Positions 26,883 through 57,915 of a stretch of 64,000 bases of DNA are shown piece after piece. Each line of letters starts with the position of its first letter. The stretch's first letter is position 1. Under the pieces are notes generated by a model, which saw nothing but the letters and a program-made list of their open reading frames with translations, had not been told where the DNA came from and searched no databases. The stretch comes from Octopus sinensis (taxonomy: Eukaryota): positions 1 to 64,000 of the forward strand of contig NW_021836129.1 of the NCBI RefSeq assembly GCF_006345805.1, in the 5' to 3' direction. Made by a program: the position numbers and the translations under genes.

Positions 26883-27789
26883 TCAACAAGCGTTCAAAGA
26901 TGACATATTCGTGGTTTTATAGATACAAATAAGTAATTTTCCTATTTTGAAATTATTTTCATCGCCAAGTTTGGAAATTTGATATAATACTTAAATAGCA
27001 CTTTAGCAGATTTTTGTTTTTACAAATTGTAGAAAAAAATATTTAAAGATGTCCATTCTCGTGCTCGAATAATGAGATTTATGAATTTGAAGGAAATAAA
27101 TTTAAAGAAATATTTTCTAATTAATTATACTACAAAGAAAAATTACTTTAAAAAGTGGTACATAATTTGATAATTCACTAACTACAATAAAGAAAGCCGC
27201 CAATTTACTTCAAAATAACCCGTATAATTGCATTTTTTAAATTTGTAAATAATGCCTGTAAGCTTATTTAGATTATTACAAAATTAATAAAACTTCTAGA
27301 ACAGTTTGTTCTATTTTATTAGTTACAAGCAATATTGAATTACTTCCTATTTGAATACAAATTAAGACCAAAACAATAATAACTATTACTTAATATATGT
27401 AGATTTCTATAATGTCTTTAAATAGATGATATTTAAATGTCAATTCTGTTTCTTTAAAACAAATATTTTTCATTTCTATCCACATTGCTTTCAACTTTGT
27501 ATATCTTCTTATCTCATATGAGTATGAGTAAATCTGAATTTTGAGTGAAATCTGATGTTAGTTCTTAAATTTGAATTGTATTTTTGTATCGATGCAAATT
27601 CTAAAAAATTAATTTACTTTGCAACGTTTTTCAAAAATTTTGAATAGATTATATTTACTCATGAAAACATGACCAGAAGTGAAATTAACTGTTTTTTTTA
27701 TAAAGAAATTGAAGTTATAAAAGCTATTAATTATTAAAAGTTATCATTATAAAACATAGAGTTTACCTGCGCCCACCCAATATCATCAA

Positions 27790-28025
27790 AGTCAAGTTTT
27801 CCTGTCTTTTCGGTCATTTTAGCAATTCGATATTATTTATTTGAAAAAAGCGCTTTACTAGTGCCGAAGTATGTTTCAGATCATTGTCTTGTTGGTAAAT
27901 AGGATTTTTAAGTTTGATTTTGTTCAAAATTTTTTCTATCACTATTGTACACGTTAAATTTAGCTTCATTACTAAAAATAACTCCCTCCCAAAAATATTT
28001 TGGGAGCATATTCCTCTCTCAAACA
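27790..28025 (-). mobile_element. Tc1 transposase fragment (copy at about 55490-55730)
   Basis: IYQQDNDLKHTS..NIELLK matches the Tc1 second-D motif. Confidence 0.75.
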
Positions 28026-29192
28026 CATTTGTAAGACACACCACACAAAGGGCAGTCCCCTTCTACTAAGGACACATGACTCACTGAGACCATGCCACCA
28101 AAGGACTCACTCTCTTCTACTTACAACACAAACTGACTCCCCTTCTACTGAGGACACGAGCCTAGAGGTGGGCATTCTATAGAAAAGTTTAGTGCAGACA
28201 TTTAATTAGTTGTTCTCAATGTTGAAACTATTGAATATTATTAATTAATTGATTATCTGGAATTTGAAAATTTTACAAAATTTTGATATCTTAAATATGC
28301 AGAATATAAAACTGTTTTGAAGCAAAAATAAAATTATTTTTCCAAATAAATTCACTTTTAGAACTCCCAGCATGTTTATTATTTTAAATTAATCCACACT
28401 TTATTTACTGAATGTAATTAGTGTGTACGTTTTTATAAGTTATGAAATCTAAATCCAAATTCGAGTTGATGGAAGCACTTATCAACAATTCGAGAAATTG
28501 AATGTTTGTATGTAATGATCCTAAATACAAATTGTGGATAACTATGCACGTTATTATGCAATGAAAGGGTAAACGACTCGGAAGACTTTGCCCCCAATCT
28601 GGCCGTCAAATTTTCAAGAAATTTATGTCTTGAAATAATAGACCATAGAAGAAAACAAACACGTTGTTCATGTCTTGTCTTGACCAAAACTAGAAAAGTG
28701 TTAAAAAAAGCTCAATGTGAGATATAAAAACCACAAAAACATCAAGAAAGGCCCGAGACTTCTTTCCCTGTCTAACCTTATCGAGAGACGGATATTCACA
28801 CACTCAATCATCAAAATGTAGGCACTAAAGTCTATAGTAAGATCTTTGTGGATCGTGTTTTATATTCGGGTATGTGTAAGGCCTCTAATGGACTTTGTTA
28901 TAGTCTACCCTGGAGGCTCCTTCAGATTGATGTGTCAAATTGGGGCGGAATCAAATAAGTCGGAGCTGATCAGCTTTACGTGAACGAAATTTGAGTGATC
29001 AAGAGATTCAGTACCATCACTGGATTCGTGTGGACAATTTTAACTAGAACCTATCTGTAATTTTAAATCTAAACTTTATCTCCGACATTAAATTTGTACT
29101 CAGTATTGTGGACATTCATTTTCCCTGAGTTTATATTAATCGGATTTATATTAAATATAATTTTTTTCGACTATGACAATTAAAATATAAAT

Positions 29193-29460
29193 AATACGTT
29201 ATTAAAAGTTAAATGTAATTAACAAATAGTTATTAACTAACTAAATTCCCGGCATCGTAAATGGAAACACAGTTTCCACGTACTATGGCCAAGGAAATCC
29301 TTTCGAAAAGCCACTTGGACTCGCGTGGGTCTCCCCGTTTATGGGAGATCATGCGGCCAAGCTTTTTTAGAAAGGAAAGAGACTTTTCGCCGATGACGCC
29401 GGAAGTCTCGACGGCGATGGGAGTGAACAGATACCGTTCAGAGAGCTCCTTGTACTTTCC
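29193..29460 (-). mobile_element. 5'-truncated CRE-like LINE insertion, present only in duplication copy 1
   Basis: Not in the ORF track: KYKELSERYLFTPIAVETSGVIG..ERISLAIVRGNC; absent at the equivalent site near 58050; AATATAAAT on both flanks. Confidence 0.88.
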
Positions 29461-30899
29461 AATATAAATATAAATTATAAGTTAAAATACTTTAATTTTT
29501 AATTTAATCTAAATTCAAAGAAATCTCTGAATTTTTAAAATGATTTTTAATATTTTCATAATTTTAAAATTTTATGCTTATCGATATCTTTCGACAATAA
29601 AAACCTGACTTTCAAGGACCAGCACAGTTTGGAGAAGACAATCCCAATATTGAACCGCATACTATGAAAAGATCCCAGTATTGCTTATTTCAGGACATTT
29701 CAGGTCATTGCGAAGGCAGACATCTTCTTTACTCTGCCCCGATTGATCAAGAACATCGTGTTTTTTTATTTGATCATTTCAGTACGTTCGGTTTTTCAGG
29801 CTTAGACTACGACTCGAGTTAGACAGTGCCCACGAACTTTTCTTTTTTGTGAGTGGCAAGCAGGCAGTTTACCTCAATCAAAAACGAGTTGTATTTACTC
29901 GGTATGTTCGTGTGTTTATTGGCATAAATCCAAGGACGAGGACGCATTTCTATATATCACATACGCCAACAAGTTGGTTTCTATGGCCGAAATTGATATT
30001 TAATTTTATTCTTTCTGGTCTCTAATCATTCTGTTTGCATGTGATCTAATTATTTTACCAATTTCTCAATAATATTAATTGGCGATGTGCTTAGTGGTGG
30101 GGCACTCATGTACTCACACTGACATACCAGATTAATCAAAACTAGCTTCATTTATAACAAGCTTCCTTTATAGTTTATATTCAGATTAGTTTACATTTTG
30201 ATTCGAATCAATATAATGCTCATGTTTTGAATTTGTGGAAATATTTTCGCAAATAAATCTGTCAAAAATGTTTTTGTTCTTTTAACTTGCAATTGATTTA
30301 TGATAATTATTAAACCACACTTGGAAAAAAATCGGAGATCATATCGTTAATTTCCATAACGACACATTTAAAGGCCCATTTCCCAGACCAGTGGAATGTC
30401 TCATGATTTCAAGACACCTCTGGCCAACAATAGGAAAGTCGACATTTTTCACTTCCAACAGAAAAAGATCATGGAGTGATAAAAAGTAAGAAAATGAATG
30501 AAATTGATCTACAAATGAACTTTAAGAAATTCTGTTGTCCAAAGTGAGAAGACGGTTGATGACAAGCAGACAAAAAGAGGTTATAACCCCCTTCAATTGC
30601 AGAAAACACTTCCCGGTGGCCAAGAAAGTAGGAGTTTCCTTCACTTACTGAATAACTCAACAAACTAGAACGTTTTAAGGCAGCAAAAAGATCAAAAATT
30701 GGAAATAAACGTGGGAGGATTAGTTAGCCTTCCTCTCTGTCTTGAGTGGAAATGACGAATGTGTAGATGAATTTGGTATAAACGAGCAACTCGGTGAAAA
30801 TGAATGCTAGAAATATCCACGACTAAGGACCGAAGCGATAGCAGGAATCTCTGAAGTGTAAATTGAGACGAAAGTCCAAACGAGTGTAAAAAATAGTCA

Positions 30900-31390
30900 T
30901 TAATATAACACCAAATACACTTTTGGACGACGAAGTGGCTAAGGTGGGTTAAGGACTGTCATTTAGATGTACAACAATGAGATCGACAGTCTGTTGGATG
31001 TATTGGAAGTCGAGAGGGATGGAGATGACTTATACGTGTCCTATGGACTATTTAAGTATTAGGGGCTGCTTATTTATAGTAATCTTAAAAAGCAGCAAGT
31101 GGAACAGTCCGACCGTATGACCGACCTACAAAGTGAAATCATGACATGTGAGGACTTGAAAGAACAGGTTTTTGGACATCATAACTTCTAGAAGAATTAC
31201 TGCTTGCTCTGTCTAAAAGCTCACAGCAAGAACTATTGAGAGAGGTAAAAACTCAGAAGAGCAAAAACCTCTATAGCAACCAGATAGTATTGTTGAAAAG
31301 CGATAGCTGTGACAAGGAACCAATTTTTGGTTATTCTATACGCAAGTTTGTTGATTGTGCTAATTTCGATTGGGGAAGCAATTAATTGAT
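30900..31390 (+). pseudogene. Unidentified intron-containing gene fragment (copy at about 59500-59990)
   Basis: LLDDEVAK|23-nt intron 30944-30966|MYNNEIDSLLDVLEVE..|24-nt intron 31056-31079|NLKKQQVEQ..; frame could not be extended cleanly either way. Confidence 0.45.
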
Positions 31391-31659
31391 GAATAATTTA
31401 ATAGGTTATTATTCGCAATTATTTCCCAAATATTTTATTGAACTTTAATCATGACACAAGTATGCTCACAAATCCGAAATTAATAATTATTTAATGATGG
31501 AATTTTATTATCAGTTCGTTTTCAACGGCATTTCTTCTAGAATTAGTCAGATTAAAGAGATTAAATTTGAGATAACTCAATTTTAAGGAACTAAATAAAA
31601 ATGTACAAATAATTAGCATAATTACACATATATAAAATGAAACTTAACAATGAATAATA

Positions 31660-32710
31660 ATGATTCTGATTGTCCTGTTGATGCTACAATACACATCAAG
31701 TATTATTTTATTGACACCAAATAGGTCCCGGTGAACTGAAGGTGAAGTATGATAAGAATATAGTAATCTATTTTTATTTTAATTCAGATGTTCATGTTGG
31801 ATGCTGTCAAAAATGTTGAATGATTATTTAACTAGCGTAGGCACTGTCACACCTAGTGAATATTTCGTTTGTCAATGAAGGAGAAGATATTTCTGTTGAG
31901 ATTGTTGAGTTTGAACTCCGTGTCAGTCAAATTGTAGTTCAGCTAGTGATGAAGGATATCATGTTATTAATAGAGTTGGAAGATTGAATGTATTCCTTAA
32001 TAGTTCAACGAATGGTTAAGGTAAATATAACACATTTATAGTCGATGGAATGTTTAACGATTCCAAATGTCAAGTATATTCAGTGTTTTAATATAAGCAA
32101 TATAAACCCGGAATTATCATATACAAATTACTCAAAATAATGAATTTTGAAGATATTGATGACCCTGACAGTATTTTAAACCCGGAAAATAAATTGTGGT
32201 CTTTTTATTTGTAATTATAGAAATGTTATCCCAAGTCCAGAATTGAATCAAAAATTCAGAGAATTAAGATTTGAAAGAGAAAGTATTGTTGAGGCATTGA
32301 GACTAAATGAAGAAAATACAAGTGAACACCAAAAAATTAATTTTGAAGATGATGAAAATATTGACAATACAATTGGAAACCAAGAAACTAATTCCGAAGA
32401 TGATGAAAATATTGACGATACGAGTGGAAGCCAAGAAATTAATCCCGAAAATGAAGAAAATACAAACAATACCATTGGAGACCAAGAAATTAATTCTGCA
32501 GCTCAAAACAATACAGTTAGTGGTGCAGAGGTCGGTAAAGGAATCAGGAAAGGTATATTGCTTCTATGTCTTTTCCCTTTTTGGAATAAGGGTGTAATAT
32601 ATAATAGTGGATATGAGTTTTTATTTCATGGCTGGTGCAGTCTTGTGCATGCTAATTCTTCTTTAATCCCAATACTTTTACTAATTCAGGACACAATAAC
32701 TAAATTTTAA
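31660..32710 (+). CDS. Orphan secreted or surface protein with acidic 17-aa repeats and 7 micro-introns
   Basis: Introns 31700-31724, 31763-31787, 31815-31840, 31920-31942, 32015-32041, 32074-32097 and 32196-32220 give one open frame from MILIVLLMLQYTSS into the 32243 ORF; three 51-nt repeats near 32335-32487; TATAAAA about 25 nt upstream. Confidence 0.75.
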
Positions 32711-32851
32711 TTTGGGCCTATCTGTTAAAGACACGTGACTGCTAAGTTTATTTTGAAATGGTGAATTAAGAAAATGATGTCAATCAAACATAGTGTTTTT
32801 TGTGTAATTAAATAAAAGTTTTGATGGTAGGAGATAGTGAGTTATTAAATA

Positions 32852-32998
32852 CAGTCTTACCTTTTTTGGAACGGACCTTGAGGCGTGGAAAACCTCTGTT
32901 TTTGATACATTTTTGAGATTTGGAACATTTCGAAAATTTATAAGAAAATTTATAAAATCCTTACCAAAAAGACCTCATTCCAAACGGAGGTTAGACTG
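32852..32998. mobile_element. 147-bp pogo-type MITE (copy at 61446-61592)
   Basis: Imperfect TIR CAGTCT(T/A)ACCT..TTTGGAA with TA on both sides. Confidence 0.8.
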
Positions 32999-33489
32999 TA
33001 TCCCAATTTTAATGAACTAAATAAAAATCAGAAATACTTCGCTTAATTACACAGATATAAAATGAAACTTTACGCTAAATAATTTTGAATCTGACTGTGC
33101 TGTTGATGCTAAAAAACTTATTAAGAACCTGTTTTCACTAATAAATTTGTATTTTAGATATTTAAGGACTATACATAAGAATATTTCCGAAAAGTGTAAA
33201 ACGTTCTAGAACCTGGAAAAAAGTTATAATAGATTAATTTAAATGAATGATTAATTCTTTGCAATCCTTGGTATATTGGAGTATAGTATCTAATATATAG
33301 TTTTTTGGTGCTTTTCACGTCAAAAGCAAACATTAATGTTGACGCATCAAGTATAATCTCGAAGCTCTAAAAATTAGCTTTAAATCCACAAATAAGCAAG
33401 GATTACAAAAAAATACAAAATCCCTTTCGACAAAGAAAACTGATCGTTGAACATTCAATTAATTGAAAATCTAATAAAGAAATTATCTA

Positions 33490-33764
33490 AATATGCCTCA
33501 ATCCTCATAAGTCGAATACTTTTCTTGAGAAAATCCAGAGATATTGAGAGCAAATCTCGTGGTAATAATTATTCTTACAAATTGAATGATTAACATAAGC
33601 AATATATTTTTGGTTTGGCCAATGATAATCTATCATTGACACTATTAAAGTTAAAAAACATGGTTTTTTCTAAATTTCGGATAAATATTAGTCCGGATGC
33701 TATTAACCAATGTCTTAAAAATTTTCCCTACATGCATCAACACTAATGCTTGATGAGTCAAGAC
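33490..33764 (+). mobile_element. Degenerate IS630/Tc1 transposase remnant interrupted by a hAT
   Basis: SRGNNYSYKL..LTLLKLK..ISPDAINQCL HTH-like segment; LMLDES motif at the hAT insertion site. Confidence 0.5.
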
Positions 33765-34996
33765 CAGGGGTTCTCAACTTTTTTAGCTCATGGGCCAAAT
33801 CGATAATTAAGAATATCTTTGCGGGCCGCACAAAAAATATTTTATGTTATTAATGAAAAGAAGGCTTTATTAAGTAATAAAATCAATGCGAGACTTGATT
33901 CTGTTTGGCGTCTATTATTTTGTCAAAACAGGGAGTAAAAGTCGAACACGATGTGCGTAAAAGTTGATTTAGGTGTCCATCAGTCAATTGATTTCGATAC
34001 TTTGTTTTTATTTGCGTAAGTTTGGTGAAAAGAGCTTCACATGTATACGTTGATCCGAAGACTGATGCATTTTTTGAGCATTATCGACCAAGTTCGGATA
34101 TTTCCACTGTGGAATTCGACCCCAAAAATCCAATAGTTCACTTGACTTAAATAGCGCGGTAAGTTGTAAATCTGCCTGCATTTCAATTAGTTCCAGTTGA
34201 TATATGTATGGAGCGGTTGCAGCATCTGCTTCCATAGGTGACAAAAATATTTTCATAATAGGTAAAGCTTCTTTAAAATCATTAAAACGTGTTTCGAATT
34301 CATCGATTAAGTCACTAATAACGCAGATATATTTTTGTAGGATCCATCTTCCCTGTGATTTGAAAGTATTGGGAAATGAATGGTAACTCTACTTTCAATT
34401 TGTATATTCCAAAGGTGTAGTTTTTCGATAAATGCAGAAACCATTCCGTACAATTCATGACATAGTTTGCCCTTACCCTGCAGAGAAGTATTCAAAATTG
34501 AAAGGTGCGTAGAAATATCTACCATAAATGCTAAATCTGCAATCCACTCCTTATCAGTAAGCTGAGGATAAAATATCTTATTGTCAATAAAATGCATAAT
34601 CTCCGGGAGAAGGTCATAAAATCTAAATGCGATTTAGTTTAAATTTATATAAAGTTTTTAGACATGCTACCCGACTCATATTCAGAAGAATGTTTTGAAT
34701 AATGCCTCTCGACATTATATGTCTTAAGACATCGTATGACAGAATGACTAATTAGGCAATGTACGTTACCATTTTCTTCAAAAACGAAAAATTTTTCCTC
34801 CCATTCGGGGTTAAATGCACGATTTTCATGAATAATTTTCTACTTCGTTTAACACGTTTATCAGACATCACAAACAATATTATTTAAACATTAATGTACA
34901 AAATATTTAATATAAAAACAAAAAATATTTAATATATTTTTATAATTTTAATCGGGCCGCACCAAAATTGTGGCGGGCCGCGGTTGAGAACCGCTG
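33765..34996 (-). mobile_element. Buster-type hAT, internally deleted
   Basis: TIR CAG(G/C)GGTTCTCAAC, perfect TSD GTCAAGAC (33757-33764 and 34997-35004); WIADLAFMVDI and FGSTYTCE motifs. Confidence 0.95.
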
Positions 34997-35069
34997 GTCA
35001 AGACTAATGATTGCGTTTTCAACGTTAAAGCTCGGAAAACCCATAAAAATTCAATTTTTTAATCAGTGA

Positions 35070-37481
35070 TTACAAATTTAAAAAAAAGATTAGTTCACAG
35101 TTTTCAATGTTTTCTAATAAATCTTTTTCAATTGTCGTTAACCTGATCAAAATGTCATTTTTGTTAATTTCTTCCTCATCCTTTATATTTTCATCATTTT
35201 CATCCTCAATGTTTCCGCAATTGTCCATCTCTTCTATTGTATCATTTTCTGCATATTCATATGCAAGAAATTCTTCAATATCCAACGGATCAAAAATATC
35301 TGTCCTTTCTATTGGTATACTATCTTCTGAATTATTTTTCACGTTATTATTATTTAGAATTCCGAAACAATTTGAAGTGGTATGTTGCGATACATCTTTC
35401 CATGCCATTTTAACAAATATCACAACATCCTTTAATGTGAGCTTTTTATATCAACTATAAACAGATATTTCTTTATGTTCTAACAAATCCGTTAAATATG
35501 CAAGTTTGTGCTTATTGAAAAGCGTTTTGAATTTTTTATGATTTTCAGGTCCATCATCTAAACCAGGGGTTCTCAACCTTTTTTTCTCGTCGACCCCTTG
35601 ATTTTTTTTGACCCCCCTAATATTTAATCGACCCCCTTAAAATTTTATATACAACAGACAATATAACTATCTGAAAAGTCAAGATAAAATTGATTTTTAG
35701 TTATTGCGTCTGCTTACAGTCGATTCTCCTCCTCTTCGAGCCCGAGCAAATCTGTTTTATTTTTTATTTACAATTCGATGTAGAATGCTAAATCCACATT
35801 CAACACAGTATGATGTCGGAAAATAGAGTAATAATTGTGCCATTTCGTTCCACAATTTTGGATAAGTCTTTTTCACTTTGATATTTTGCCAAAAAATAAC
35901 TGACGTTTTTGAATCTTCATAGTATAGTTTTAATTCTGGATTGAATTTTAAAGTAATTAATATTTTATTTTTCTTCTGGCTTCGACAAAAAAGGATTAAT
36001 CATCCAAGATGAAATTTCTAATTCAAGAATATCTTGGAATATGACTTTCGTCATTTTAAAGCGAAAAAATAGTATTTTTAAGGCTTTCACATAAAATATG
36101 TTCAACATTATCAGACATTTCGTAAATCCTGCGACATTACGTAAACTGAATCATTGCTAATTGGCACAGATTTTAAAATTTCGCCAGGATTTAAACCCAT
36201 CAAATCTGATAGAATCACTGATATAGATGGTTTGATGAGATTTTCACCAGAAACGTGGGAACTCGTATTTTTGGCAGTAATTATTGCAATTTTATAGGAT
36301 TCAATTAGTCCTCCTTAATTTAAAATGAAAAAAATTATTAAATTATATTCGACCCCTTACGATCGATTTGGGCTGATTTTCGACCCAAGGTTGAGAACCA
36401 CTGGTCTAGACCAAGCCTGTACTATTTCGCGATATAAACATGATTTCAATATTAGACAAATTTTCTGGTATGCAATGGGAAAAACAGTTATCCAGAATAT
36501 GCAAAATTTGTTTTCTCTGTAATTTTAGATTCAAATCAAAGTTTATTAACCAATCTATGAAGATTTTCCCAGTCATCCAAATACGCTGGGAGCTATAATA
36601 TGAAATAAATGAATCGTAATTGTAATTTTTGAAACATCGGGGTTTTTTGGGTTTTGATATCATCACAGGTTTTAATTTATGAGTTTTACTAATATTCGTG
36701 CAAAGCATTACAGAAACACGATCCTTGAAATTTTTGTAACCTTTAAATCGGTTACGAAAAATGGATTTTGAAGGAATGATTTAATAAAACAATCCAGTTT
36801 CATCTAAGTTGTAAATTTGATCATCATTGTATTTCTGCGAAACTTCACGAAATTTAGAAAGAAAAGATTCGATATCAACGGGATCATCTGTTTTTAATTC
36901 TCCATGCAATTTTCGCATCGAAATCCATTTCGTTTTTTAAATTTTTCCAAAAAGCCATTTGATTTTTAAAATTTACTAGTTTAAGTTGTTGCGCAAAAAA
37001 CATATCCTTACTAGAAATTAAGGCTTCATTAAGAAAACCGTCTAAATATTGGACCCTAAATAAGATACCTCTAGACACAATCAAATCCATCCATTCAACC
37101 AATTTTGCATCAAGTTCAGGAAACTTAAGATTTGATACTTTTTTTAAATCTAGATTGTGTATTATGCTATCTTTGAGAAGAGAATCTTTTTTCAAAAGAA
37201 TGTTGTTATTTGTTTTTCGAGAAATTTTTTTATTAAACAAAAAAGAAAATTTTTCGGCCAAATGATGACACGAAAAATGAGGATTTTTTCTTTATAAGAT
37301 AAAATTTCTATTTTCTGATTAAAATTCAGACGAGTATAAATATTGCGAGAAGACATTTGGGACAAATTTTATTAATAAATTTCAAATTTATTAAAAAAAA
37401 TTTTGAAGAATAAAAATTATAGTACAAAAAAATTAAAATTTGTGGCCAATTTGAGAGGGGCCAATTTGAGAGGGTTGAGTG
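35070..37481 (-). mobile_element. Degenerate pogo/Tigger element
   Basis: HTH FPELDAKLVEW, YNLDETGLFY, ILDNCFSH, AWKDVS..NCF; one terminus CACTCAACCCTCTCAAATTGGCC|TA at 37481. Confidence 0.85.
35564..36403 (-). mobile_element. ZBED8/Buster-type hAT deletion derivative nested in the pogo
   Basis: TIR CAG(G/T)GGTTCTCAACC; TSD ATCTAAAC/GTCTAGAC (6 of 8 match); YPKLW..FPTSYCVECGFS. Confidence 0.88.
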
Positions 37482-38017
37482 TATTATCTTATTTTCTCTG
37501 GTCTGGTATAGATTGCTTCGACCAATAAAACAGTTCGTTCATACGAGGAGTTCTGATGAATAAACTGGAAAATTATTTTTTGAGACATCTGTTCGATGAG
37601 CAGAAAAATTTTTATCAGGAGTTATCAATTTAATGTTTTTGATTGTAAAAATCTATGAATTAAGTAGAGATCACGGGGAGCTTTTACTCTGCTCCACGAG
37701 TTATAATTCACGAATTCGAAATCAAGGTTAACTCTGGATATATCACTCTCGATGTTGTCCATTATCGCAATTAGTTCTGAACACAAATATGTGTCGAAAT
37801 ATTTGATTTTAAATTTCAGATCAGTAAATGCTTCCTCGATTGAATAATGTACCCCTTCTGTTTTTGTAATTAAATTTATGACCACTTAGTAATTCCCATT
37901 ATTTTTTTATTTTATTTATTTATTAACCCCCAAGCTTGCATAGCAAACCCAGCACAAGCAGTCACATTATGGATTCGAATAGTATAGATTCATCGTGGAA
38001 TTCGAATTTTTATTATA

Positions 38018-38275
38018 TTATGAAAATGGGAATTTATTTCTGATTTCAACTAAATGTTTTGAGAAAATTGCATCATTTTCAAAAAATTTAATTCTTCTCA
38101 ATTTATCAGACAATATGTCCTCAATTTGTATGGACATTTCATCAATTTTTCTACGAAATGTATTATTACTGAGAGGGGTGTTTTTTATTATCTCTGAACC
38201 ATTTTTGCACATTTTTAACAAAGTTTTAAAAGAAGAAATACATAATATTTTTTGCAAGTGTATGGAGATAACCAT
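38018..38275 (-). mobile_element. ZBED5-like hAT fragment
   Basis: PLSNNTFRRKIDEMS..IEDIL motif. Confidence 0.7.
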
Positions 38276-38385
38276 TTTGGGCAGTTAATTCTACTATTAC
38301 AACCAAATGTAATCAGTTTAAAAGTGAAAATGAAAAAGTCCGCGAGAAAAAACGAGCTCGACCTACGAGCGCTGTGAGATAACGG

Positions 38386-38720
38386 TTATGTCCAGGCCGA
38401 ACGGATAGCTTGTGCGTTGCTGCGCATAATTGTAACCGAAATTCTTTGTCTCAGCCAAGAGGATTCGTGTCCATCCATGTTTCTCCGAGAGATAAGGAGA
38501 CCGACGTCTATCAAGAACTTGGCTGTTTGCGGGCCGAAGGATCCGGAGGTCTCGAAAGCCAAAAGGACAAAGTAATGTTGGGCAGTGGGTTGTCTGTACT
38601 TATCGACTTTGTGGGCTTCCCCCCCCCACCTGTCCAGACCGACTGGTTCAAGTACATTCGGGAAACCGGCAGCATTAAGTGCTCTCGAGATGACGTCGTT
38701 GAGTGCCCCGTGACGAGGTA
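38386..38720 (-). mobile_element. Third CRE-like LINE 3' fragment, internally deleted
   Basis: RHGALNDVISRAL.AAGFP.VLEP.GL..FETSGSFG..QRISVTIMRSN; the RPDG/WD segment is missing. Confidence 0.85.
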
Positions 38721-39049
38721 ATTCTGCTATTTGATATAAAAAGGTCACTTTTTTTTGGTTTTGAATTTTCGATTTTATAAAAAAATGTAAAATACTTTAT
38801 TCCATGTTAAGAATAAATTTAAGACATACAGTCAACCTTCGTTAATCCGAAAATTCAAATCGCTTTCCCTTCGGATTATGAAGAAATCTAAAATTTATAT
38901 GAACGTTAGATAAATGATCAGATTAGTGATCAAATTACTAATCTGTTTATAAACACAATTATTTGTAGAAAAAATCGAATAAAGTTTCTTTTTATAGTAT
39001 TTTTTTAATTAATTTTTGTAAATCATCCGAGATGTGTTTCAAATTTTTT

Positions 39050-39430
39050 ACAGTATCGTTTGTTATATTTTGAGAAAAGCAATTCGAACAAGAACTTGAT
39101 TAATGACAATTTGAATTGCTTGGAAATTGTTCTTCAAAATGTGACTTGGCGCGTAATCAAAAAGTAAATAAATTTTTTGTTATATTGTTCATTTCATCAT
39201 CAAGTAGCAGCATCACGCAATTAAACAAATAACTGGCTTTCGAATTTGGATAATAATGACAGTATTTTCCAACATTGAATCCTTTGAAACAGTTTGGTTT
39301 CTTGCTGTGTCCTGTCCATTCCGTTAATAACATCCATTCGAGATATCCTTTTTATCAATGAATTCTCAAGCAGATAATAATTTTTACAAGCTAGTCTATA
39401 GTAAGTGTTTGAGCTCTCACTGTTTTTCAT
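39050..39430 (-). mobile_element. Possible N-terminal/zinc-finger fragment of a KRBA2-like integrase
   Basis: KNYYLLENSLIK and a SCSNC motif; very degenerate; Tigger-like end CAGTCAACCTTCGTTAATCCG nearby at 38829. Confidence 0.35.
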
Positions 39431-47600: not shown

Positions 47601-47800
47601 CCCTACACAAAATAGACATAAATGACCGAACCAATCATTTTCCTGTCGTACCAACCTCCGTTTCCGAGACACTGTCGAATTAATTCGATTGGAGTTTGAG
47701 CTCCCCAGATTTCTAGTGCTGGTATATTCAAATCATCAATAAAAAATATTCGTTTTTTCCCCAGAGGAGGGCCGTAGATTCACTTCCGACTGTCTGGGTC
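41616..47800 (-). pseudogene. DNAH1: Axonemal inner-arm dynein heavy chain (DNAH1-like) pseudogene, AAA3 to C-terminus
   Basis: FIDDLN, AMGP.GGGRN, PTPNKTHYTFN, LNNILNS, YLGPFT, SLGQGQGPRAE, QNCHLA.SWMP, KYPVLYEESMNT, YKTLTRAGTLS.TGHSTNF; many 23-29 nt introns; TGA at 44435-44437 where Trp is expected; frameshifts, large internal deletions and a hAT insertion. Confidence 0.92.
45528..47291 (+). mobile_element. Degenerate Buster/GTF2IRD2-type hAT inserted in the dynein pseudogene
   Basis: Ends CAGGGTGTCAAA and TTGACACCTCTG; LTRNTVAE, AIDETVD, CTDGAPNM, RWLS, FGSTYLCEQLFS; stops and deletions. Confidence 0.9.
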
Positions 47801-49839
47801 CAACAAATTTCAAAACCTCGTCGAAAACCTTAAAGAACAGTCCAAATGCAGTGAAAGACTTCTAAATGATCTGAAATGTCGTTTTAATTCACTTTTGGAC
47901 AAAGTTTCAAGTTTTGAACAGTTGCACTGCAAGGCAATGACAGAACTAAAAATGCAAAACAACGAACTTTGTGTATTTTGTTGATTTAAAATAAGCATAA
48001 AATCGAACTAAATTTGACGGAGAATGAACCAATGATTTCTGAGTTTAGAAGAATGAATTTAGAAATTTCCGACAGGCAAATAATGACGGGAGAATTCTAC
48101 GGAATTTTATTTGAAATAATCAGACGGGACCAATTAGATTCCAAAGCAACCACACATGTCTGATTTGGGTAGATTAGGTTTCTGGTGGAACAGTGGCTTT
48201 TCAAATTGACTCATGATAAACGAATGGATGTTAGAAAGGCCTAAGGACCTGATTTGGGTAGATTAGGTTAAGATTTTCAAAGTCATAAAATTAGCTTATT
48301 TTGTAGATTTAAATATGAAAACAGCCTTTTTTCTTGATTAAAGTTTGTAATAAACATTTATTCTAATCATGCTTTTACGAAGAATAAAAAAAGTAGAATA
48401 AAAGTTAAAACAATTTTGATAAATTTTTATGGATTTTAGTATTTGAAATTTCCTACAATCAGGCAATGGAACCGAATCCAAGAACTCTTATGTGACAAAA
48501 GTCTGTGACAAGTTCTGCATTACTCAAATACATATGAAACTAAACAATCCAAAGAGTCAGGGAATTGTCTAAAGATTTAATCAGATCATCACGGAGTTTA
48601 TTGTATTTATTTTATAATTAACAAGAAGCTTCTTATTTAGAGATATTATGTGACGATTACTTTTTTCTATTTACAAAAGTTTGAATATTCATACTGGTAA
48701 AATGTAACTATTGTTTCAAAATTTTCTATCAATTTTGTGAACGTTTAATACAGTGGGGAGTATGTTTATAATAAATAGTCGTTAATTTTTGATTTGACGA
48801 TAATCAACATTAATAAAATTTATCATGATTTCACCTTTGGCTCGGTCTCACTCTCGCCACATATTACAAAGGGAAACATTAGGATTAAATATTCATTTCG
48901 GCGTCCTGACCTCACTATTAGTTTTTAAAAACTAGTAAAAACTTTTTAATACCAAAAAATGATTCGTCTCTTAAGTCAGATGCCATGCTGACTGCAATCT
49001 ATATTATCTCTTGATGCTCGTTGATTGAGTCTTTTATTACTCAGAGGATGTCGCTCCATTGCACTTTTTGAGAGGTCTGGCCGAGAGAAGAGGAAGAAGA
49101 GACGAAACAGGTGTTTAGAGTGCTGCCCATTGTTTATTCCGAAGGTTTGTTTATCCCGAAAATATTAGCAAAGTCTGAAACACATTGAGCCGGCGGAAGT
49201 CGAAGTGAGCTTGTAATTGAAATGTTCAGAACATCTCAGAAGAATTGGATTAGTTGTAATGGTTTGGAGATCTATGACAAAAATGATAAGTTACATTTTT
49301 GGAAAATTCTATTTTGCTGAATAAAAATAATTAATCATGTCCTAATATTGTTTCTGTAAAATTAAAGTTTCTAAATGTCGCCGAAAAAATTATGAATATA
49401 TTCTGATATATATTCATTTGGAACATTTTTGGTCAGTTTTTTCGTGATTGTCACGGTTTTGGAAATCCCGGTCGGACCCACGCAAAGCACTTGGTCAGTC
49501 GGATTAAATATTTACAGGTTTTTTGTTTTTTAGAAGAAGATCAAGTATGTACAATGATCTTATATGGTCAACGGTTGGCACAGTTATGTCAATGAACCTT
49601 TGTTGGGAGGAATTGAGAATTGGTCTCTATTTTGGAATCAACATTTTTTATATTTATACTTCATTTGGCAGACTTTCCATTCATTTGACATATGTCTAAG
49701 AAATATTCCATTATATAATTCTGCCTTAATACATTTTTTTAATTATTGAATTCAAGTTACCTTCAGAATCAAAATGTCGAAATAATGTCGGAATTTTGAC
49801 CGAAAAATGTGAAATAAAATAATCGGATTGTTAATTAAT

Positions 49840-50520
49840 GAAAAGATTTTTCTAATTATTGATGGAACTGATGCTAGCTAAGACAAAATTGTAAATATTC
49901 TTATTGAGAAAATAACTTATAGCATCTATCTTAGCGATTATAGAGCATTAAATTTTTTGCCGAGTTGTATGTTAGATTGTAAACGGTACAATTCGTTTTG
50001 TGAATGCTGAAAGAAAAAATTTTTACTCTTATTAACCGACGCTGTAAGGTTGATAATTCAGTCGGAAAAATAGTACAAAATTTTTCATTTTAACCTGTTT
50101 TTAGTAATATTTATTTCACATTTGATTAATAATTGTACACTGAATTATCGTGTAGTAAAAAACTTAAGAAAACTTAATTTTTAACTCTATTTTACTTTCA
50201 CTTTGGAATTTTTCCATTTTGCATCCAAAATTCAAAAATAATAGGTTTTAGGAATAATTTGTTTTTAGAATGTCTATCTTTCGTAAGAATCCTATACAAT
50301 TGCGAAATAGTTCTCTCAACAAAAGAAAAACTAGCTCTGTTTGAAATCCTAATAAAACTACATTCGATTCAAACTGAGGTGTGAACGAGTAAAAGTCCTG
50401 TGATGAAACTTGACTGCACTACTCAAAAATATCTGATACAGTAAAGAACTTTCAAGATTGTTGTAGACTGTATTCAAGATTAAAACAGATTATGCGACAT
50501 GCTGAATACCGTTCAATATA
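49840..50520 (+). mobile_element. Highly degenerate relative of the 21231 hAT
   Basis: RKN(F)LLLLTDA resembles RQNFLLLITDS; fragments only. Confidence 0.4.
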
Positions 50521-50617
50521 AGCAACTGACTGCCAGTTCCTAACTGTTTAACGCAGTGCTGATTCTCTCCAAAAATTATGTCCATATTGACGAAAGCTTG
50601 AAGTGTAGTCACCCTAT

Positions 50618-52562
50618 CTACGTACTACTGCTATTCAAACAGGGAATGAAAAAATACAAAAATATATATTGGGCGTCTCTCCTCATGCGGGAATATATAA
50701 TACTCGTTAGAAACTCGTGGTTAACCCCATCCAAGTCAGTATTTAGGGGAAGTGAAGAAGGCTCAGTGGACTGTAAGTAGGCTTGCACTAAAAATAGAAA
50801 AAGAAGGCAAACTGTCACGAGCGTGTTGTTGGATAAATGTGCGAGTTTGTGAAGGTGGAGTCCAACTTGGGTTGTTTCTCTGAAATGTGAGAATAAAAGC
50901 ACCGAAAATGCAAGGAGTGATATTTCGAGTTTATCATGAAGAGTGGTGTGGTCAGGGGGGACATGAAGGAGGGCATAATCCAGCATATCTCCACCTGCGT
51001 GTGTACGGAGAGTATGTTGGCAAACAAAATGTACAAGTCGTGGGATTTGATGTCGAAAAAAGAAGAAAAGAAATAAAGGAGCAGTAAATGGTGCAGCCAC
51101 TTGTTGTATCAAATAAATCTGTAAGTGTTGAATAAGTACAACTAAATGTGATTGAAAGAGGAGTGTAAAATGTCGATAAGTGTGGAGTGGTTGATGTTGG
51201 TCGGGGGAGAAATGATATAAATGGGCTACCAGATGGGGGATAATGTGGTGTGGATTAGTAGTGGTAGACTATGATAAGGAGAGAGAAAACAACCTGTCGA
51301 CTACTAGCAAAGGCATAAACAGCAGCTGGAATATAAATAAACAAAGACAGACTAGTGATGGCAATAGCAGTCACAATTCTGGGGACTTGAAGAATAGTGT
51401 CATGAAGGAGTGTAAGTACAGCAAACAAGAGAAGGACAGCCCCCGCAAAATAAGTAGCATGTCTTGCCAACACACCCACCAATGGAGAAGAAAAACATTG
51501 AATATACTGATTGGCAAAAGGATAGGCCAAAGCAAGTCGTTCCTCCAATTCATGATCCAATTCAGAGTAGTTACGAAGGGAATAGTAAGCAATAGGAGTC
51601 CAGCGGTGTCGAAATATACTGGAAGGAGCCCTACGAATCATCTAAACTAATCAGACAGACATACCTCAGCATATTCGAAGCACACATACAACAGTTGGAC
51701 AACAAACAAGAATGGGGATAAAACTAAGCCAAACAAGCACATCACCACCAACCGTGTTCTAATTCTACCATATTAGAGAAGGCTACGTTCTCTCCGCATA
51801 TTCCCTCAGACCCCCCACTCGGTATATCTCTGCTATACTCACCCTTGTTGAGAATACAGTCCCCTGCACACACGACGGAAATAAGAGCTTAAACAAATAC
51901 AATTCCATCAATTTTGTAAAGCAAGGAATAGATTCAAATTCTCTTATTAGTCCTACCATAAAATTGGTATGTCGGACAATCATGCTGTGGCAAACTTACA
52001 TTATACTTACATTCTTACGTAATTCATCTAGGCCACTGTCCTTCTCCATTAGTCCTCTCTCAATCCTCTCCCATGCAGTCACGTACAGTTCATTCTACCA
52101 TCACATCCACTCACTCACTGAATTTATAGACATATCCTTCAATAATCTCCTCATATTCCACAAATGGGGCAGTCTCCATAATAGAATACATATTTTGACA
52201 ACACTGAATATTCCCACTCCCACCACTACACACATTTCCCCTCTACTACACACTCTCAGACATGACTCCACTGGTAGGAATATGTCTGATATGTTCCCTT
52301 CTTTCATATTCCACCAATCAAAGTCCACACATTTATATACGTACATTACAAACACACACAAAAACACAATTCGTCTATATTCATTTAGTCTTTAGTACAT
52401 TATATTGAATAGTTCGTCCACTATTATGCACCATATTCCTTTCTTTCGGTAGTAGTCGTACACTGAGCTTACCAACCAGTCCCTTTCCGTAGTCGAGAAG
52501 GTCCCACTATTCGATGTGTTCAACAGAGGTTTCGACAAGTCATCCAGATCCACATCATCCAT
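50618..52562 (-). CDS. ATG9: Autophagy protein ATG9, apparently intact, with micro-introns
   Basis: MDDV..VYDYYRKKGIWCI..|..CVDF..IVRHTNFMVGL..RWTPIAYYSLRNYSELDHEL..APFTAPLFL..GGDM..KLEISL..NNPSWTPP; 24-nt introns at 52375-52398, 52095-52118 and 51995-52018. Middle introns and the exact 3' end were not all traced. Confidence 0.9.
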
Positions 52563-53199
52563 TCAAACCTCAATTTTATTTATTACCACCAACCTAACAA
52601 ATATATATATAAATATATTCTTATAATTATATTAAAATACAGGGGTCCTACAACTCGTACATCTTATTAAAGTTGGGTACTTAATCGACCAAGCACAGTC
52701 TGTTCTGTTACATCGACTGGCAATGTTGACTGATATTTTGTTGTCAATAAATAGACGAGACTCCTACGAATTGTCCATGTCAGTTATCTACTCTCTCAGA
52801 ACTAGATTTGGGCTTCAGAGAACGGAATCCAGTGCATAAATGCGTATGACAAAACATTACACATTTATTGACCAAACAAAGACATTCTTAGTTGATTAGT
52901 TACTTTAAACTAAATGGTTTGGAAAATAATTTTGAGAAATCAGCGACAAGTTAGTCTACCCATTTTCATCTTGACAGATAAATAAGTGCAAAGTAATATA
53001 CACCCCTCGACATTAAAATCCAAACAATTAATAAATCGTCATTTTTATTATCAAATTTAGAAAAAAAACCTTTGAGCATAATATTTTTTTCTATATTTTT
53101 AGATTAAAAAAATATATATTTACAAAAGTTTTATAAACGATATTTAAAAGCATAAAACGTGTTTTCAGTGGCGTAAAATTCCGGAGACTTTTGCTATTA

Positions 53200-55079
53200 C
53201 AGTACGACCCCGGTTTGGGGCAGACCCCATGGGTGGGGCACCCTCGGGTTTTGGGGCACCCCCGCTTTTAGGGGCAGTTTTTGAAAACAGTAAATTTTTC
53301 ATTCTATTATTTATTTTTGATGACCCCGGTTTGGGGCACTTATTTAATTTATTTAATTACAAAATGTTAGTTTATTTATTAATTATTAATTAATACTATT
53401 ATTTCACGTGTTTATTTTGACTTTAGTATGGTTCGTAAAAAGAATTCAAAGATTAATTATGAAACAAAAATTAAAATCGCTAAAGATATAAAACATGGTC
53501 AATTTTCAGAAAGAGATCTTGCTAAAAAGTATAAAACGAGCAAAGGTATCTTTTTTAACTAATTATTAATTACAGGTACTATTTCTCGCATTAAACAAAA
53601 TTTTGTTTATTATTTTGACGCGGGATTAACTGAATCCGATAGAATCAAGGAATCACATGATCCAAATAATGAATTAGATAGATTAGTTTTTGAAACTTTT
53701 CTACGTCTGAGAGATGAATTTCTTCCAATTTCTGGAACTATCTTAAAACTGATTGCAAAAAATTATCTAAAAAGATAAATTATGAATCATTTAAGGCATC
53801 AAATGGATGGCTAGACCGGTTCAAGAAAAGACACGAGTTGCTATTTAAAACTATAAGTGGAGAAAAGAATTCATCTGACCTTTCTACGGTTTCCAATTTT
53901 TTTGCTGATTATGACAACTGTTTGGAAACTGTAGGAAGTGAAAATATTTTTAACTGTGATGAAACAGCTTTATACATAAAGCGAACGCCGTCGAAATCTT
54001 TTGTTCAATTTAATGACAAATGCAATGGAATTAAAATGAGCAAAGAGAAAGTTACCCTTCTCCTTTGTTGTAATGCACTTGGTGAAAAGTTAAAACCTCT
54101 ATTAATTGGAAAATTCAAATCTCCTAGGTGTTTAAAAAATTTTAACGCTGAGGATCACGGAGTACTATATGCTGCATCAAAAAATTCGTGGATGACTAGT
54201 GATATTTTTGGGAAATGGTTATGGAAAGTAAATCAAGATATGATCAATGAAAAGAGAAAAATTGTCTTAATACTGGATAATGCGAGCTGTCACAGAAATA
54301 CAGAATATTCCAATGTTTATTTACTTTTTCTTCCCAAAAATACGACCGCTTTAATTCAACCCCTAGATATGGGAATAATAAAATCCTTCAAGTCCCTCTA
54401 TTTCAATAAACTGATTGATTTTACTCTTATATTTGAAAAAGAACAGCTTTCTGATTTGAATTTGAATAATGTCAATCTTAGACAAGTCATTACAGTTGTC
54501 GGGGAGGCATGGAAAATGATGTCAGAGACAACGATAATTAATTGCTGGCAGAAAATAAATGAAAACAGATCAAAAATTTCGGATAATGTACAGTTGGACG
54601 AAGAATTAATAGATGACGTGATTTCAGATGTTATTTCAATGGATTCGACAGATATTATTGAGGACAAAATTACTTATGATGGATATGAATCTAAAAAATC
54701 ATCAATTAAAGAAATCATAAACATCGTGAATTCTCTAGAAGATAATATTTTCAGTACATGTCCACAATTTTTGAAAATCTACTACGAATTTAGAAAAAAC
54801 CTATCAGGAGAACTGAAAAAAAACCAATTCGGTGAGAAAATTACTGATTACTTTTAATAGTATTTTTTGTTGGATTTATTAAAATTTTTAAATTTTATTA
54901 AGAAAGGACTATGTTAGAATTTTTATTAATATTAAATAATTTTAATTTATAGTCTAAAATGCAATAAAAATCTATTGAGGAGAAAATAAAAGCAAAAAAT
55001 CTTTACCCTCGCATTTTGGGGCACCCCCGCTTTTTAGGGCACTATGATAAAAATGCTGCCCCAAACCGGGGTCGTACTG
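53200..55079 (+). mobile_element. Full-length pogo/Tigger element
   Basis: Perfect 24-bp TIR CAGTACGACCCCGGTTTGGGGCAG, TA on both sides. Confidence 0.95.
53428..54857 (+). CDS. pogo transposase (DD29D) with 30-nt intron 53546-53575 and one 1-nt frameshift in an A6 run near 53757-53762
   Basis: MVRKK..TSK|GTISRIK..ASNGWLDRFK..NCDETAL..LDNASCH..QPLDMGII; 466 aa if one A is restored. Confidence 0.85.
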
Positions 55080-57588
55080 TATTACTTAATATATGTAGAT
55101 TTCTATAATGTCTTTAAATAGATGATATTTAAATGTCAATTCTGTTTCTTTAAAACAAATATTTTTCATTTCTATCCACATTGCTTTCAACTTTGTATAT
55201 CTTCTTATCTCATATGAGTATGAGTAAATCTGAATTTTGAGTGAAATCTGATGTTAGTTCTTAAATTTGAATTGTATTTTTGTATCGATGCAAATTCTAA
55301 AAAATTAATTTACTTTGCAACGTTTTTCAAAAATTTTGAATAGATTATATTTACTCATGAAAACATGACCAGAAGTGAAATTAACTGTTTTTGTTTTTAT
55401 AAAGAAATTGAAGTTATAAAAGCTATTAATTATTAAAAGTTATCATTATAAAACATAGAGTTTACCTGCGCCCACCCAATATCATCAAAGTCAAGTTTTC
55501 CTGTCTTTTCGGTCATTTTAGCAATTCGATATTATTTATTTGAAAAAAGCGCTTTACTAGTGCCGAAGTATGTTTCAGATCATTGTCTTGTTGGTAAATA
55601 GGATTTTTAAGTTTGATTTTGTTCAAAATTTTTTCTATCACTATTGTACACGTTAAATTTAGCTTCATTACTAAAAATAACTCCCTCCCAAAAATATTTT
55701 GGGAGCATATTCCTCTCTCAAACACATTTTCTACGACACACCACACAAAGGGCAGTCCCCTTCTACTAAGGACACATGACTCACTGAGGCCACGCCGACA
55801 AAGGACTCCCTCTCTTCTACTTACAACACAAACGGACTCCCCTTCTACTGAGGACACAAGCCTAGAGGTAGGCATTCTATAGAAAAGTTTAGTGCAGACA
55901 TTTAATTAGTTGTTCTCAATGTTTAAACTATTGAATATTATTAATTAATTGATCACCTGGAATTTGAAAGTTTTCCAAACTTTTGATATCTTAAATATGC
56001 AGAATATAAAACTGTTTTGAAGCAAAAATAAAATTATTTTTCCAAATAAATTAACTTTCAGAACTCCCAGCATGTTTATTATTTCAAATTAATTCACACT
56101 TTATTTACTGAATGTAATCAGTGTGTACGTTTTTATAAGTTATGAAATCTAAATCCAAATTTGAGTTGATGGAAGGACTGATCAACAATTCAAGAAATTG
56201 AATGTTTGTGTGTAATGGTCCTAAATACAAATTGGGGATAACTATGCACGTTATTATGCAATGAAAGGGTAAACGACTCGGCAGACTTTGCCCCCAATCT
56301 GGCCGTCAAATTTTCGAGAAATTTATGTCTTGAAATAATAGACCATAGAAGAAAACAAACACGTTGTTCATGTCCCGTCTTGACCAAAACTAGAAAAGTG
56401 TTAAAAAAAAGCTCAATGTGAGATATAAAAACCACAAAAACATCAAGAAAGGCCCGAGACTCCCTTCCCTGTCTAACCTTATCGAGAGACGGATATTCAC
56501 ACACCCAAATTGTAGGCACTAAAGTCGAATAGTAAGATCTTTGTGGGTCATGTTTTATATTCGGGTATGTGTAAGGCCTCTAATGGACTCTGTTTATAGT
56601 CTACCCTGGAGGCTCCTTTAGATTGATGTGTCAAATTGGGGCGGAATCAAATAAGTCGGAGCTGATCAGCTTTACGTAAACGAAATTCGAGTGATCAAGA
56701 GAATCAGTACCATCACTGGATTCGTGTGGACAATAAGTCCACGACGATTGGTATTGATCTTGAAATACGCCAGTCTCCTAGTTGTGTAACTCTGACGGAA
56801 CTTCAAACTCAGTGCTGTAAAGATTTCTTGACATGCATTGCTTGCCGAAAAAATAACACTACATAAGATTGGACTTGTACGGGAAACTCCGGATAGACGT
56901 TGCAATCTTTTGGAGCAAAAGAAAGTTGAACTTTTCCCACTATGTCTAAAATTATTTTCTGTTATGAAAAACTTTCTACAAAACTATAAAAAGTGCACTA
57001 TTAATATTTATAGCACTATTTTATAATCAACTCTTCAATTTGTGAGTTAGATTGAGTCTTTTTTTATGCTTAAATCATGTCCAAAGATTGAGTCTCTTTT
57101 AGACAAAAATTGTGCATGGCCAGCTGATTACACCTTTTGACGTTTAAAAGATCAAAATAAAATTTTTTGATAAAAACGTATTCAAAGCAATTAACGAATC
57201 CGGTCTGTCACTTTACAACTATTATATTGGACTAATCAACATTGAACCACACGAGTTTAAGGATATTTATGTTTATGTTCGACGTATTCTTTATAAGATA
57301 AAACTTTATTTAAACCCTGCAAATATATAAAGACTCTATTTACTAAAAGATAAACTTGGGTGAGAACTTACTTCAATTGTGTTAGTAATTGAATGCATTT
57401 TGTTCAAATTCCTCTATAATCTGAAAAAAAATCTGAAAGAACCTGAAATTCTGTGGGCTTTAAATTTAAAGAAAACACATATAACAATAATCGCGGGATC
57501 TTTAACTCTGAAATAGATGTAAGAAAACTCCAAAAGTTCAAATTAAATGTTTATTGATAAAAATTGACAGTAAATCTCTTTATTGTAT

Positions 57589-57915
57589 GTCACAGTGGCT
57601 GAAGACTAAGCTATGGATAATGGATTTGGACGGTCGTGAGTTCGATTCCGAAGGAGGCTGTTTTTCATCCTGGGGGTAATTCTCGTTATCGTTCCCCTGC
57701 CCGTGAGGCAACGAGTACTTCTGGCACGACACAGTTGGAAATGGGGATCTCTTACCTTCCGGGCTTAGCGTGGCGTTACGGGGTCCACCATGTCAGTTGG
57801 AAATTCCTTCGGATATGGCAACGCTCAGTAGGCACTTAATGCCTACCGAAAGAGGATTCTTAGCTTCTCAGACCCTGGGACATCGTCGTCTCAGGCCGAT
57901 CTTGCGGGAAGGATT
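57589..57915 (+). other. Candidate tRNA-derived SINE or structured RNA
   Basis: A-box-like TGGCTGAAG and B-box GTTCGATTC about 44 nt apart, followed by a GC-rich body with hairpins (TGCC-CGTGA-GGCA; GTAGGCA-CTTAA-TGCCTAC). Confidence 0.4.

Follow-up and report, generated by a model that had tools for sequence, protein, structure and literature searches.

A pogo transposon at the exact start of a direct repeat in a contig labelled Octopus sinensis: a plausible transposase-made junction

A pogo element flush with a direct repeat

The stretch of DNA analysed here (the window) comprises positions 1 to 64,000 of contig NW_021836129.1 in assembly GCF_006345805.1, labelled Octopus sinensis, and harbors a pogo/Tigger-type DNA transposon placed between two copies of a repeat. 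Copy 1, the intervening DNA, the transposon and copy 2 follow one another in direct orientation, and copy 2 begins at the terminus of the transposon plus its target sequence. An earlier note had taken this arrangement for an 8-kb duplication of host genes, with a breakpoint made by the transposase or by recombination between two pogo copies. The observation itself is confirmed, and its interpretation finds partial support: the transposase may plausibly have made the junction, a mis-join of the assembly is nearly as likely, and the duplication is not 8 kb, not demonstrably of host genes and not fresh. The features on which the argument rests are the following.

27294..27383, + strand: unique left flank of copy 1 (...AACAATAATAAC), without pogo, excision footprint or terminal inverted repeat (TIR)
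27384..34678, + strand: repeat copy 1 (A), from self-BLAST, with a 278-bp insert at 29187-29464 found in this copy only
53198..53199, no strand: TA at the left TIR, the end of the ATG9-upstream DNA
53200..55079, + strand: pogo/Tigger-type DNA transposon of 1,880 bp (DDE_1, HTH_Tnp_Tc5), between the end of the interval that follows copy 1 and the start of copy 2
53200..53223, + strand: left TIR CAGTACGACCCCGGTTTGGGGCAG, from an inverted-repeat search, the same terminus at all loci
53428..54857, + strand: pogo transposase gene, with a 30-nt intron at 53546-53575
55056..55079, + strand: right TIR CTGCCCCAAACCGGGGTCGTACTG, from an inverted-repeat search, at all loci
55080..55081, no strand: TA at the right TIR, the first two bases of copy 2, equivalent to 27384-27385 in copy 1
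55080..63273, + strand: repeat copy 2 (A'), from self-BLAST, with a 1.18-kb segment at 56735-57915 found in this copy only

Across the element the letters read ...TTTGCTAT-TA-(CAGTACGACCCCGGTTTGGGGCAG ... CTGCCCCAAACCGGGGTCGTACTG)-TA-TTACTTAATATATG, and a longer read of its flanks gives ...ggagacttttgctat-TA-CAGTACGACCCCGGTTTGGGGCAG...CTGCCCCAAACCGGGGTCGTACTG-TA-ttacttaatatatg.... From 55080 onward the sequence matches base for base that from 27384 onward (AAC-TA-TTACTTAAT...), and in boundary alignments the 90 bases to the left of each breakpoint bear no relation to each other, position 27383 being C and position 55079 being G. The breakpoint does therefore fall exactly at the TIR and its TA, as had been claimed, and the left flank of the element is indeed unrelated ATG9-upstream DNA: Pfam matches to ATG9 were found on minus-strand open reading frames (ORFs), with E=2.2e-22 on that of 51258-51641, and the ATG9 start codon lies 636 bp from the left end of pogo. 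The 600 bp to the left of pogo have no other match within the window, and no homology to 63274-64000 or to the flank left of 27384 was found elsewhere in it. When the left end of copy 1 was tested as a possible transposon terminus, no TIR was found at 27384. An 18-nt inverted match straddling this boundary was rejected as an AT-rich chance match, and a 5-bp direct match, TATTA, on both sides of pogo was likewise treated as chance because other pogo copies have no such extension. The TA is present at both 27384-5 and 55080-1, but 2 bp carry no target specificity. There are no N gaps within the window.

The element is a clear pogo/Tigger member (Tc1/mariner-type, DDE_1) and displays all three features of this class. 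Its TIRs are perfect over 24 bp, its long ORF covers positions 1-177 of the 177 of the DDE_1 profile (PF03184, E=4.1e-39), and a CENP-B/Tc5-type helix-turn-helix domain is found in the same ORF (HTH_Tnp_Tc5, PF03221, E=3e-7; PF04218 also in relatives). After removal of the intron and translation, the transposase of the window copy proves to be frameshifted: one base is missing from an A-run near 53757, and translation stops after codon 106. In the multiple alignment of the family the window copy shows only two private positions relative to the consensus, namely one substitution and one 1-bp deletion (column 560), and it holds no informative shared variants that could reveal a chimera of two copies.

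Self-BLAST resolves the repeat into three colinear blocks, 27384-29038 = 55080-56734 (96.6%), 29047-29186 = 57916-58055 (97.9%) and 29465-34678 = 58060-63273 (98.1%). The segment confined to copy 2 holds a dispersed repeat (57704-57856, 90% against positions 4969-5126 of locus L004). At their right-hand side both copies carry a transposon remnant of hAT type, listed below together with the DNA between copy 1 and pogo.

33886..34870, - strand: hAT-like (FAM200A/GTF2IRD2-like) remnant of copy 1, with an internal deletion (tblastn)
34679..53199, + strand: interval from copy 1 to pogo, with a second pogo-like remnant, a DNAH1-like fragment and ATG9 (Pfam, DNAH1 alignment)
35073-37291, - strand: second, unrelated pogo-like remnant (Pfam)
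42300-49511, - strand: DNAH1-like dynein gene fragment (Pfam, DNAH1 alignment)
about 50-52.6 kb, - strand: ATG9 (Pfam)
52395..52562, - strand: first coding exon of ATG9, containing the start Met (Pfam, E=4.6e-5)
62480..63637, - strand: hAT-like remnant of copy 2, with frameshifts, keeping the middle part missing from copy 1 (frame analysis)

In copy 1 the N-terminal zinc-finger part of this remnant (34657-34845) is fused to the C-terminal part (33886-34624), and the point of fusion is the apparent right end of the duplication. By tblastn, residues 120-178 of P0130 map to 34821-34657 and residues 450-548 to 34624-34331, while residues 284-350 of P0131 map to 34845-34657; in other words, residues 450-745 of P0130 run straight into residues 120-178, the middle being deleted. 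Copy 2 spans residues 326-745 of the same protein (residues 326-461 at 63628-63236), and a Dimer_Tnp_hAT match covers 62480-62983 (Pfam). Because the remnant of copy 1 carries an internal deletion at this point, 34678/63273 is no true end of the duplication, and the size of 8 kb given in the earlier note is not borne out. We infer that 63274-64000 is the stretch lost from copy 1 and that homology should restart beyond the window; the repeat probably runs off the window, with 8 kb as a lower bound.

The further claim that host genes were copied does not hold for the visible copies, which consist of transposon debris with Pfam matches to hAT only. No host gene is recognisable in them, the larger ORFs having no Pfam match except the hAT domain, and the 1,293 amino acids of the concatenated copy-2 ORFs, searched against 5.8 billion sequences, retrieved only distant hAT proteins (about 31% identity). 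The Tc1-like motif YQQDNDLKHTS marks a further remnant at 27.8-28.1 kb, and Rfam and tRNA scans found no RNA genes. The host genes of the interval, namely the DNAH1-like fragment and ATG9, would have been copied only if the unit reaches through 34.7-53.2 kb. The ATG9 exon has no relative in a word-indexed protein search, and an exhaustive search with the dynein exon gave a best identity of at most 72%.

The pogo family and its genome of residence

Proteins with the annotation 'tigger transposable element-derived protein 6-like [Octopus sinensis]' match the pogo ORF at 100% identity. Through such annotated proteins seven further copies were reached on contigs of GCA_006345805.1 (VCDQ01002911, 012107, 002185, 000515, 013367, 011214 and 011809), none of which is the window, and eight loci were accordingly compared. 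In an exact search each copy is bounded by TA-CAGTACG...CGTACTG-TA, and the copies at the seven loci are 99.2-99.8% identical to that of the window. Since all eight loci read TA-TIR...TIR-TA, 55079/55080 is a true terminus of the element. A copy with the left flank ...AACAATAATAAC-TA, which the earlier note had suggested looking for, is not among these eight loci, a set that covers only copies with annotated proteins.

The exactness of the boundary could in principle be fortuitous, if the start of the homology were older than pogo and the element had chanced to insert at the boundary TA. Pogo targets TA, the region is 68% A+T and the element is younger than the divergence of the copies (see below), all of which would favor such an event. 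Nevertheless, it requires the choice of one particular TA among thousands nearby, at a site that carries no mark of its own, the flanks of the eight loci sharing no motif beyond TA, and we regard it as very unlikely.

The family is recent and probably active, since its copies are 99.2-99.8% identical and one of them, at 17419-19298 of locus L002, has an intact transposase frame of 466 amino acids once the 30-nt intron is removed, which makes it a candidate autonomous element. More informative for the window is the contig VCDQ01002911.1 (L001), where a complex at 9704-13466 begins with the left 1,456 bp of the element, continues with an inverted right part of 422 bp and ends in a full copy, all joints lying at TA: fL-TA-E[1..1456]-TA-rc(E[1459..1880])-TA-E[1..1880]-TA-fR. 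This structure was modelled as the right and left ends of two element copies, which could be sister chromatids or adjacent elements, inserted together into the element's own internal TA (window 54656-7). The hybrid-end model agrees with the observed L001 sequence (3,963 bp) in 3955 of 3969 alignment columns. The alternative of simple nesting, with an equal total length, was rejected, with 3126 of 4039 columns matching and 764 mismatches. In addition, both parts of the complex carry a variant at column 343 that is absent from every other copy. On the evidence of this contig's sequence, the family joins the ends of two element copies, and alternative transposition does take place here. As L001 is a hybrid-end product of the same family, it raises the prior for, and lends support to, a transposase-made junction in the window.

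Two other observations were made on these copies. The nearest named relatives of the transposase outside this genome, at 40-50% identity, belong to microsporidian parasites of amphipods (Dictyocoela, Cucumispora), which hints at horizontal spread among parasites. At 8773-9753 of locus L003, a copy of about 980 bp resembling a miniature inverted-repeat transposable element (MITE), with inverted termini of the GGTTGAGAAC type, is inserted in a pogo copy and flanked by repeated TTTAAGGCA; related MITE-like termini are found in the window at 34982-35003, 35557-35580 and 36387-36410, adjoining the second pogo-like remnant.

The organism that carries this family was assessed from gene structure and composition. 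The dynein gene of the window aligns with axonemal DNAH1 (bit score 248, E=7.5e-73) after removal of GT..AG inserts of 27 nt and 24 nt, and introns of 24-30 nt are found in both the dynein and the pogo of the window. The genes adjoining other pogo copies are compact. The window has a guanine-plus-cytosine (GC) content of 32% and the VCDQ contigs have 31-38%, with several repeat families common to both. Among animals, introns this short are reported only for myxobolid myxozoans and for Dicyema japonicum (PMC13644364), and the latter has its home in the renal sac of Octopus sinensis (PMC6736024). The genome of D. japonicum comprises 67.5 Mb with 36.7% GC, 49% repeats and a mean intron of 38 bp; pooled animals of one octopus were sequenced, showing a heterozygosity of 1.24%, and two assemblies were merged into one, from which allelic scaffolds were then removed (PMC6736024). 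Based on the introns of 24-30 nt, the GC content of 31-38%, the richness in repeats and the compact genes, the window and the seven VCDQ contigs appear to be DNA of a dicyemid (Dicyema) parasite despite their Octopus sinensis labels.

Divergence of the repeat copies and origin of the junction

Based on the exact TIR/TA junction, the direct layout and the product on L001, we hypothesize that the junction between pogo and copy 2 was made by the pogo transposase. A hybrid element would have formed from the right end of the pogo upstream of ATG9 and the left end that this element has on another chromatid or homologue, and the two ends together would have entered the TA at 27384, at a distance of about 25.8 kb. 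The viable product would be X - [27384..53199] - pogo - [copy of 27384..] - ..., in which the transposon marks the joint of a direct tandem duplication. The interval 34679-53199 would then be the rest of a 25.8-kb unit, and the second unit would be visible for its first 8.9 kb. The hAT-like deletion in copy 1 is compatible with a unit larger than the visible repeat.

Comparable products have been described for other transposons, in accordance with the statement of the earlier note that such events give tandem duplications with Ac/Ds and P. In maize, reversed-ends and sister-chromatid transposition of Ac/Ds lead to tandem direct duplications (Zhang et al. 2013, PMC3744419), and in the duplications attributed to alternative transposition of Ac, which extend from 8 kb to 5.3 Mb, the transposon stands between two direct copies (PMC3744419), the same layout as that of the window. 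In both cases a cut-and-paste element lies exactly between direct copies, the second of which starts at the terminus plus the target-site sequence, and the reaction, which for the window is a proposed one, draws its ends from two element copies or chromatids. On the other hand, Ac/Ds are hAT elements with an 8-bp target duplication, whereas pogo uses a 2-bp TA, so that the match of the target is uninformative here; and in maize the events were recovered de novo, along with the reciprocal deletions, whereas the copies in the window are 1.8% diverged and the reciprocal product is not known. Hybrid element insertion by the P element (Gray, Tanaka and Sved 1996, as cited in PMC3744419 and PMC8225341) is similar in that left and right ends from different chromatids insert nearby and produce a duplication or a deletion beside the element. 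With the homologue as target, the duplicated copies in that study reportedly come from different homologues and may differ from the start. The P-element reaction was demonstrated genetically in Drosophila males, whereas the present case is deduced from a final sequence in another organism and another transposon family. Among TA-targeting elements, impala (Tc1/mariner, Fusarium; Hua-Van et al. 2002, as cited in PMC8225341) offers a precedent for non-canonical products; that of L001 is a specific self-targeted hybrid-end insertion. Membership of the window junction in the class of alternative-transposition products is not established: the layout matches, the copies are not as young as the sister-chromatid version would have them, and the TA is uninformative.

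The age of the copies is the main difficulty. Over 6,993 aligned bases copy 1 and copy 2 differ by 127 substitutions (1.82%; 81 transitions), by 16 small indels and by three large ones. The differences are unevenly spread: there is no substitution in the first 647 bp adjoining pogo, copy 2 showing its first one at 55727, divergence rises to about 4.7% over 28031-30207, only 2 substitutions fall in 30207-31087, divergence is 2-2.6% over 31087-32798 and it drops to 0.3% over 32798-34678, about half of the repeat length being almost identical between the copies. If pogo were of the same age as the copies, a uniform clock would predict about 17 private substitutions for it, against the one seen (Poisson P(<=1)=7e-7).

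These data weigh against the hybrid-end origin proposed above, at least in its simplest form, together with some further points. A duplication between sister chromatids should have left copies as young as pogo, which those in the window are not; given a divergence of 1.82% and three large indels against a single private substitution in pogo, a recent event of this kind does not fit, and an extra assumption is required (a homologue as partner, later allelic exchange or gene conversion). The TA of the junction, at 2 bp, says nothing specific about the target, any second version of 34.7-53.2 kb following copy 2 would lie beyond the end of the window at 64000, and an assembly join through pogo yields an identical sequence. 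An estimate that pogo is at least 10 times younger than the duplication, which supposes a uniform clock, was kept only as evidence against the sister-chromatid origin. The clock cannot date the event cleanly because the patchy divergence breaks its assumption of uniformity; such blocks are consistent with allelic haplotypes or with gene conversion between paralogues. Given this patchwork of differences, the second unit of a hybrid-end insertion would have come from a diverged homologue, as in the P-element reaction, or one of the copies would later have exchanged sequence with other alleles.

The same pattern is what a false duplication of haplotypes (or strains) might leave behind. In such a case there would be one true copy, and haplotype 2 would have been laid after haplotype 1 by a mis-join at pogo: two real, polymorphic insertions, one upstream of ATG9 and the other at the TA 27384 on the other haplotype, would have been joined through a 1.9-kb repeat of 99.7% identity. 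The divergence is patchy in the manner of allelic variation (none over 647 bp, then about 4.7% over 2.2 kb, and 0.3% over the final 1.9 kb), and its mean of 1.8% is close to the heterozygosity of 1.24% in pooled D. japonicum (PMC6736024). Moreover, the join lies inside a multi-copy, near-identical repeat (pogo, 1.88 kb, 99.2-99.8% between loci). The presence of apparent parasite DNA in a host assembly means that coverage may be low and that the sample may be a population. The other repeat of the window (2-3247 = 15677-18955) shows 30 one-sided deletions of 1-2 bp, as unpolished long-read sequence does. Against this, two independent young insertions would be needed in the same orientation and 25.8 kb apart, and at the six loci other than L001 no second family copy was found in the fetched DNA, up to 10 kb on each side. 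A length of 1.9 kb is usually spanned by long reads, so a break would be likelier there than a mis-join. In long-read assemblies of heterozygous samples, haplotype ('heterotype') false duplications usually occur at contig ends or gaps. The window resembles them in that, in a pooled heterozygous sample, a repeat joins two nearby direct copies whose divergence is roughly equal to the heterozygosity; it differs in that both pogo junctions are exact and the sequence is free of gaps. We consider this explanation a real possibility, somewhat below an even chance.

The youth of pogo beside its diverged copies may also be reconciled without haplotypes, by an older segmental duplication that was cut later. 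The young pogo would either have deleted its flank, by alternative transposition to a nearby TA, or have recombined with a second, directly oriented pogo copy, and the DNA between the ATG9-upstream region and the start TA of copy 2 would have been removed, so that homology only seems to begin at pogo. Blocks of low divergence could then be gene-conversion tracts between paralogues 28 kb apart. Hybrid-end reactions, which this family carries out, lead to deletions no less readily than to duplications (PMC3744419), and the earlier note had also mentioned that two pogo copies might have recombined. Nonetheless, this scenario involves the most steps (besides an old duplication, either an insertion and a deletion or two insertions and a recombination), neither the lost left part nor a second pogo has left a visible trace, and the window pogo offers no informative variants that would expose a chimera of two copies. 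In our view it is unlikely, less so than a chance insertion at the boundary.

By comparison, the hybrid-end insertion requires, besides a diverged homologue or allelic exchange, a single insertion and a single aberrant event such as the family is seen to perform. That such an insertion made a tandem duplication of the unit 27384-53199, with the divergence stemming from diverged homologues or later allelic exchange, is the explanation we favor, tentatively and at less than an even chance; it is nearly tied with the haplotype false duplication, and some weight is left for explanations that did not occur to us. The earlier proposal of a transposase-made junction is thus sustained by the exact TA terminus, the layout and the fit with L001, and weakened by the fact that the copies are not fresh, while a mis-join or a recombination between pogo copies would give the same sequence. 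The fuller proposition, in which a pogo active in a dicyemid made a tandem duplication of at least 26 kb, including the 3' part of the dynein gene and ATG9, by hybrid-end transposition and left a second, self-targeted product on the L001 contig, is a real possibility, short of an even chance.

If the junction is real, transposase-made tandem duplication would be extended from hAT and P elements to the pogo family, and a concrete route to gene duplication would be provided in a genome otherwise known for reduction. Should the hybrid-end origin be true, the window and the L001 product together would represent evidence from a natural genome that a TA-targeting pogo restructures a highly reduced animal genome, as Ac/Ds and P do. 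Conversely, if the junction is a mis-join, it would be a useful warning that pooled samples of parasites with young and nearly identical transposons can give rise to spurious 'tandem duplications', with junctions of seemingly enzymatic precision. In either case, the contigs labelled Octopus sinensis that carry this pogo family seem to be dicyemid, which matters to users of that annotation.

Further features of the window

The second direct repeat (2-3247 = 15677-18955) is 98.2% identical between its copies and runs past the start of the window. Of its 32 indels, 30 are deletions of 1-2 bp that affect the copy at the start of the window, as might be expected of poorly polished long reads or of a contig end. 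Its right boundary (3247/18955) shows no obvious transposon end.

Remnants similar to the hAT-like ones of the two repeat copies are found at 2.4-2.8, 18.1-18.6 and 23.3-24.0 kb, and another FAM200A/GTF2IRD2-like remnant, at 45887-47132 (+ strand), lies inside the DNAH1-like gene on the opposite strand. A Tc1-like ORF at 13450-14577 (+ strand) encodes an uninterrupted 375 amino acids with a DDE_3 match (E=1e-17) and is flanked by inverted repeats of about 148 bp and 80% identity (13153-13300 / 14593-14740); a protein look-up returned no record for it, and together with the inverted repeats it may constitute a complete Tc1/mariner element. As for the dynein heavy chain, only the part from AAA3 to the C terminus is visible, and ATG9 (50000-52562) sits where the 5' part would be expected; the DNAH1-like dynein may be a truncated gene copy.

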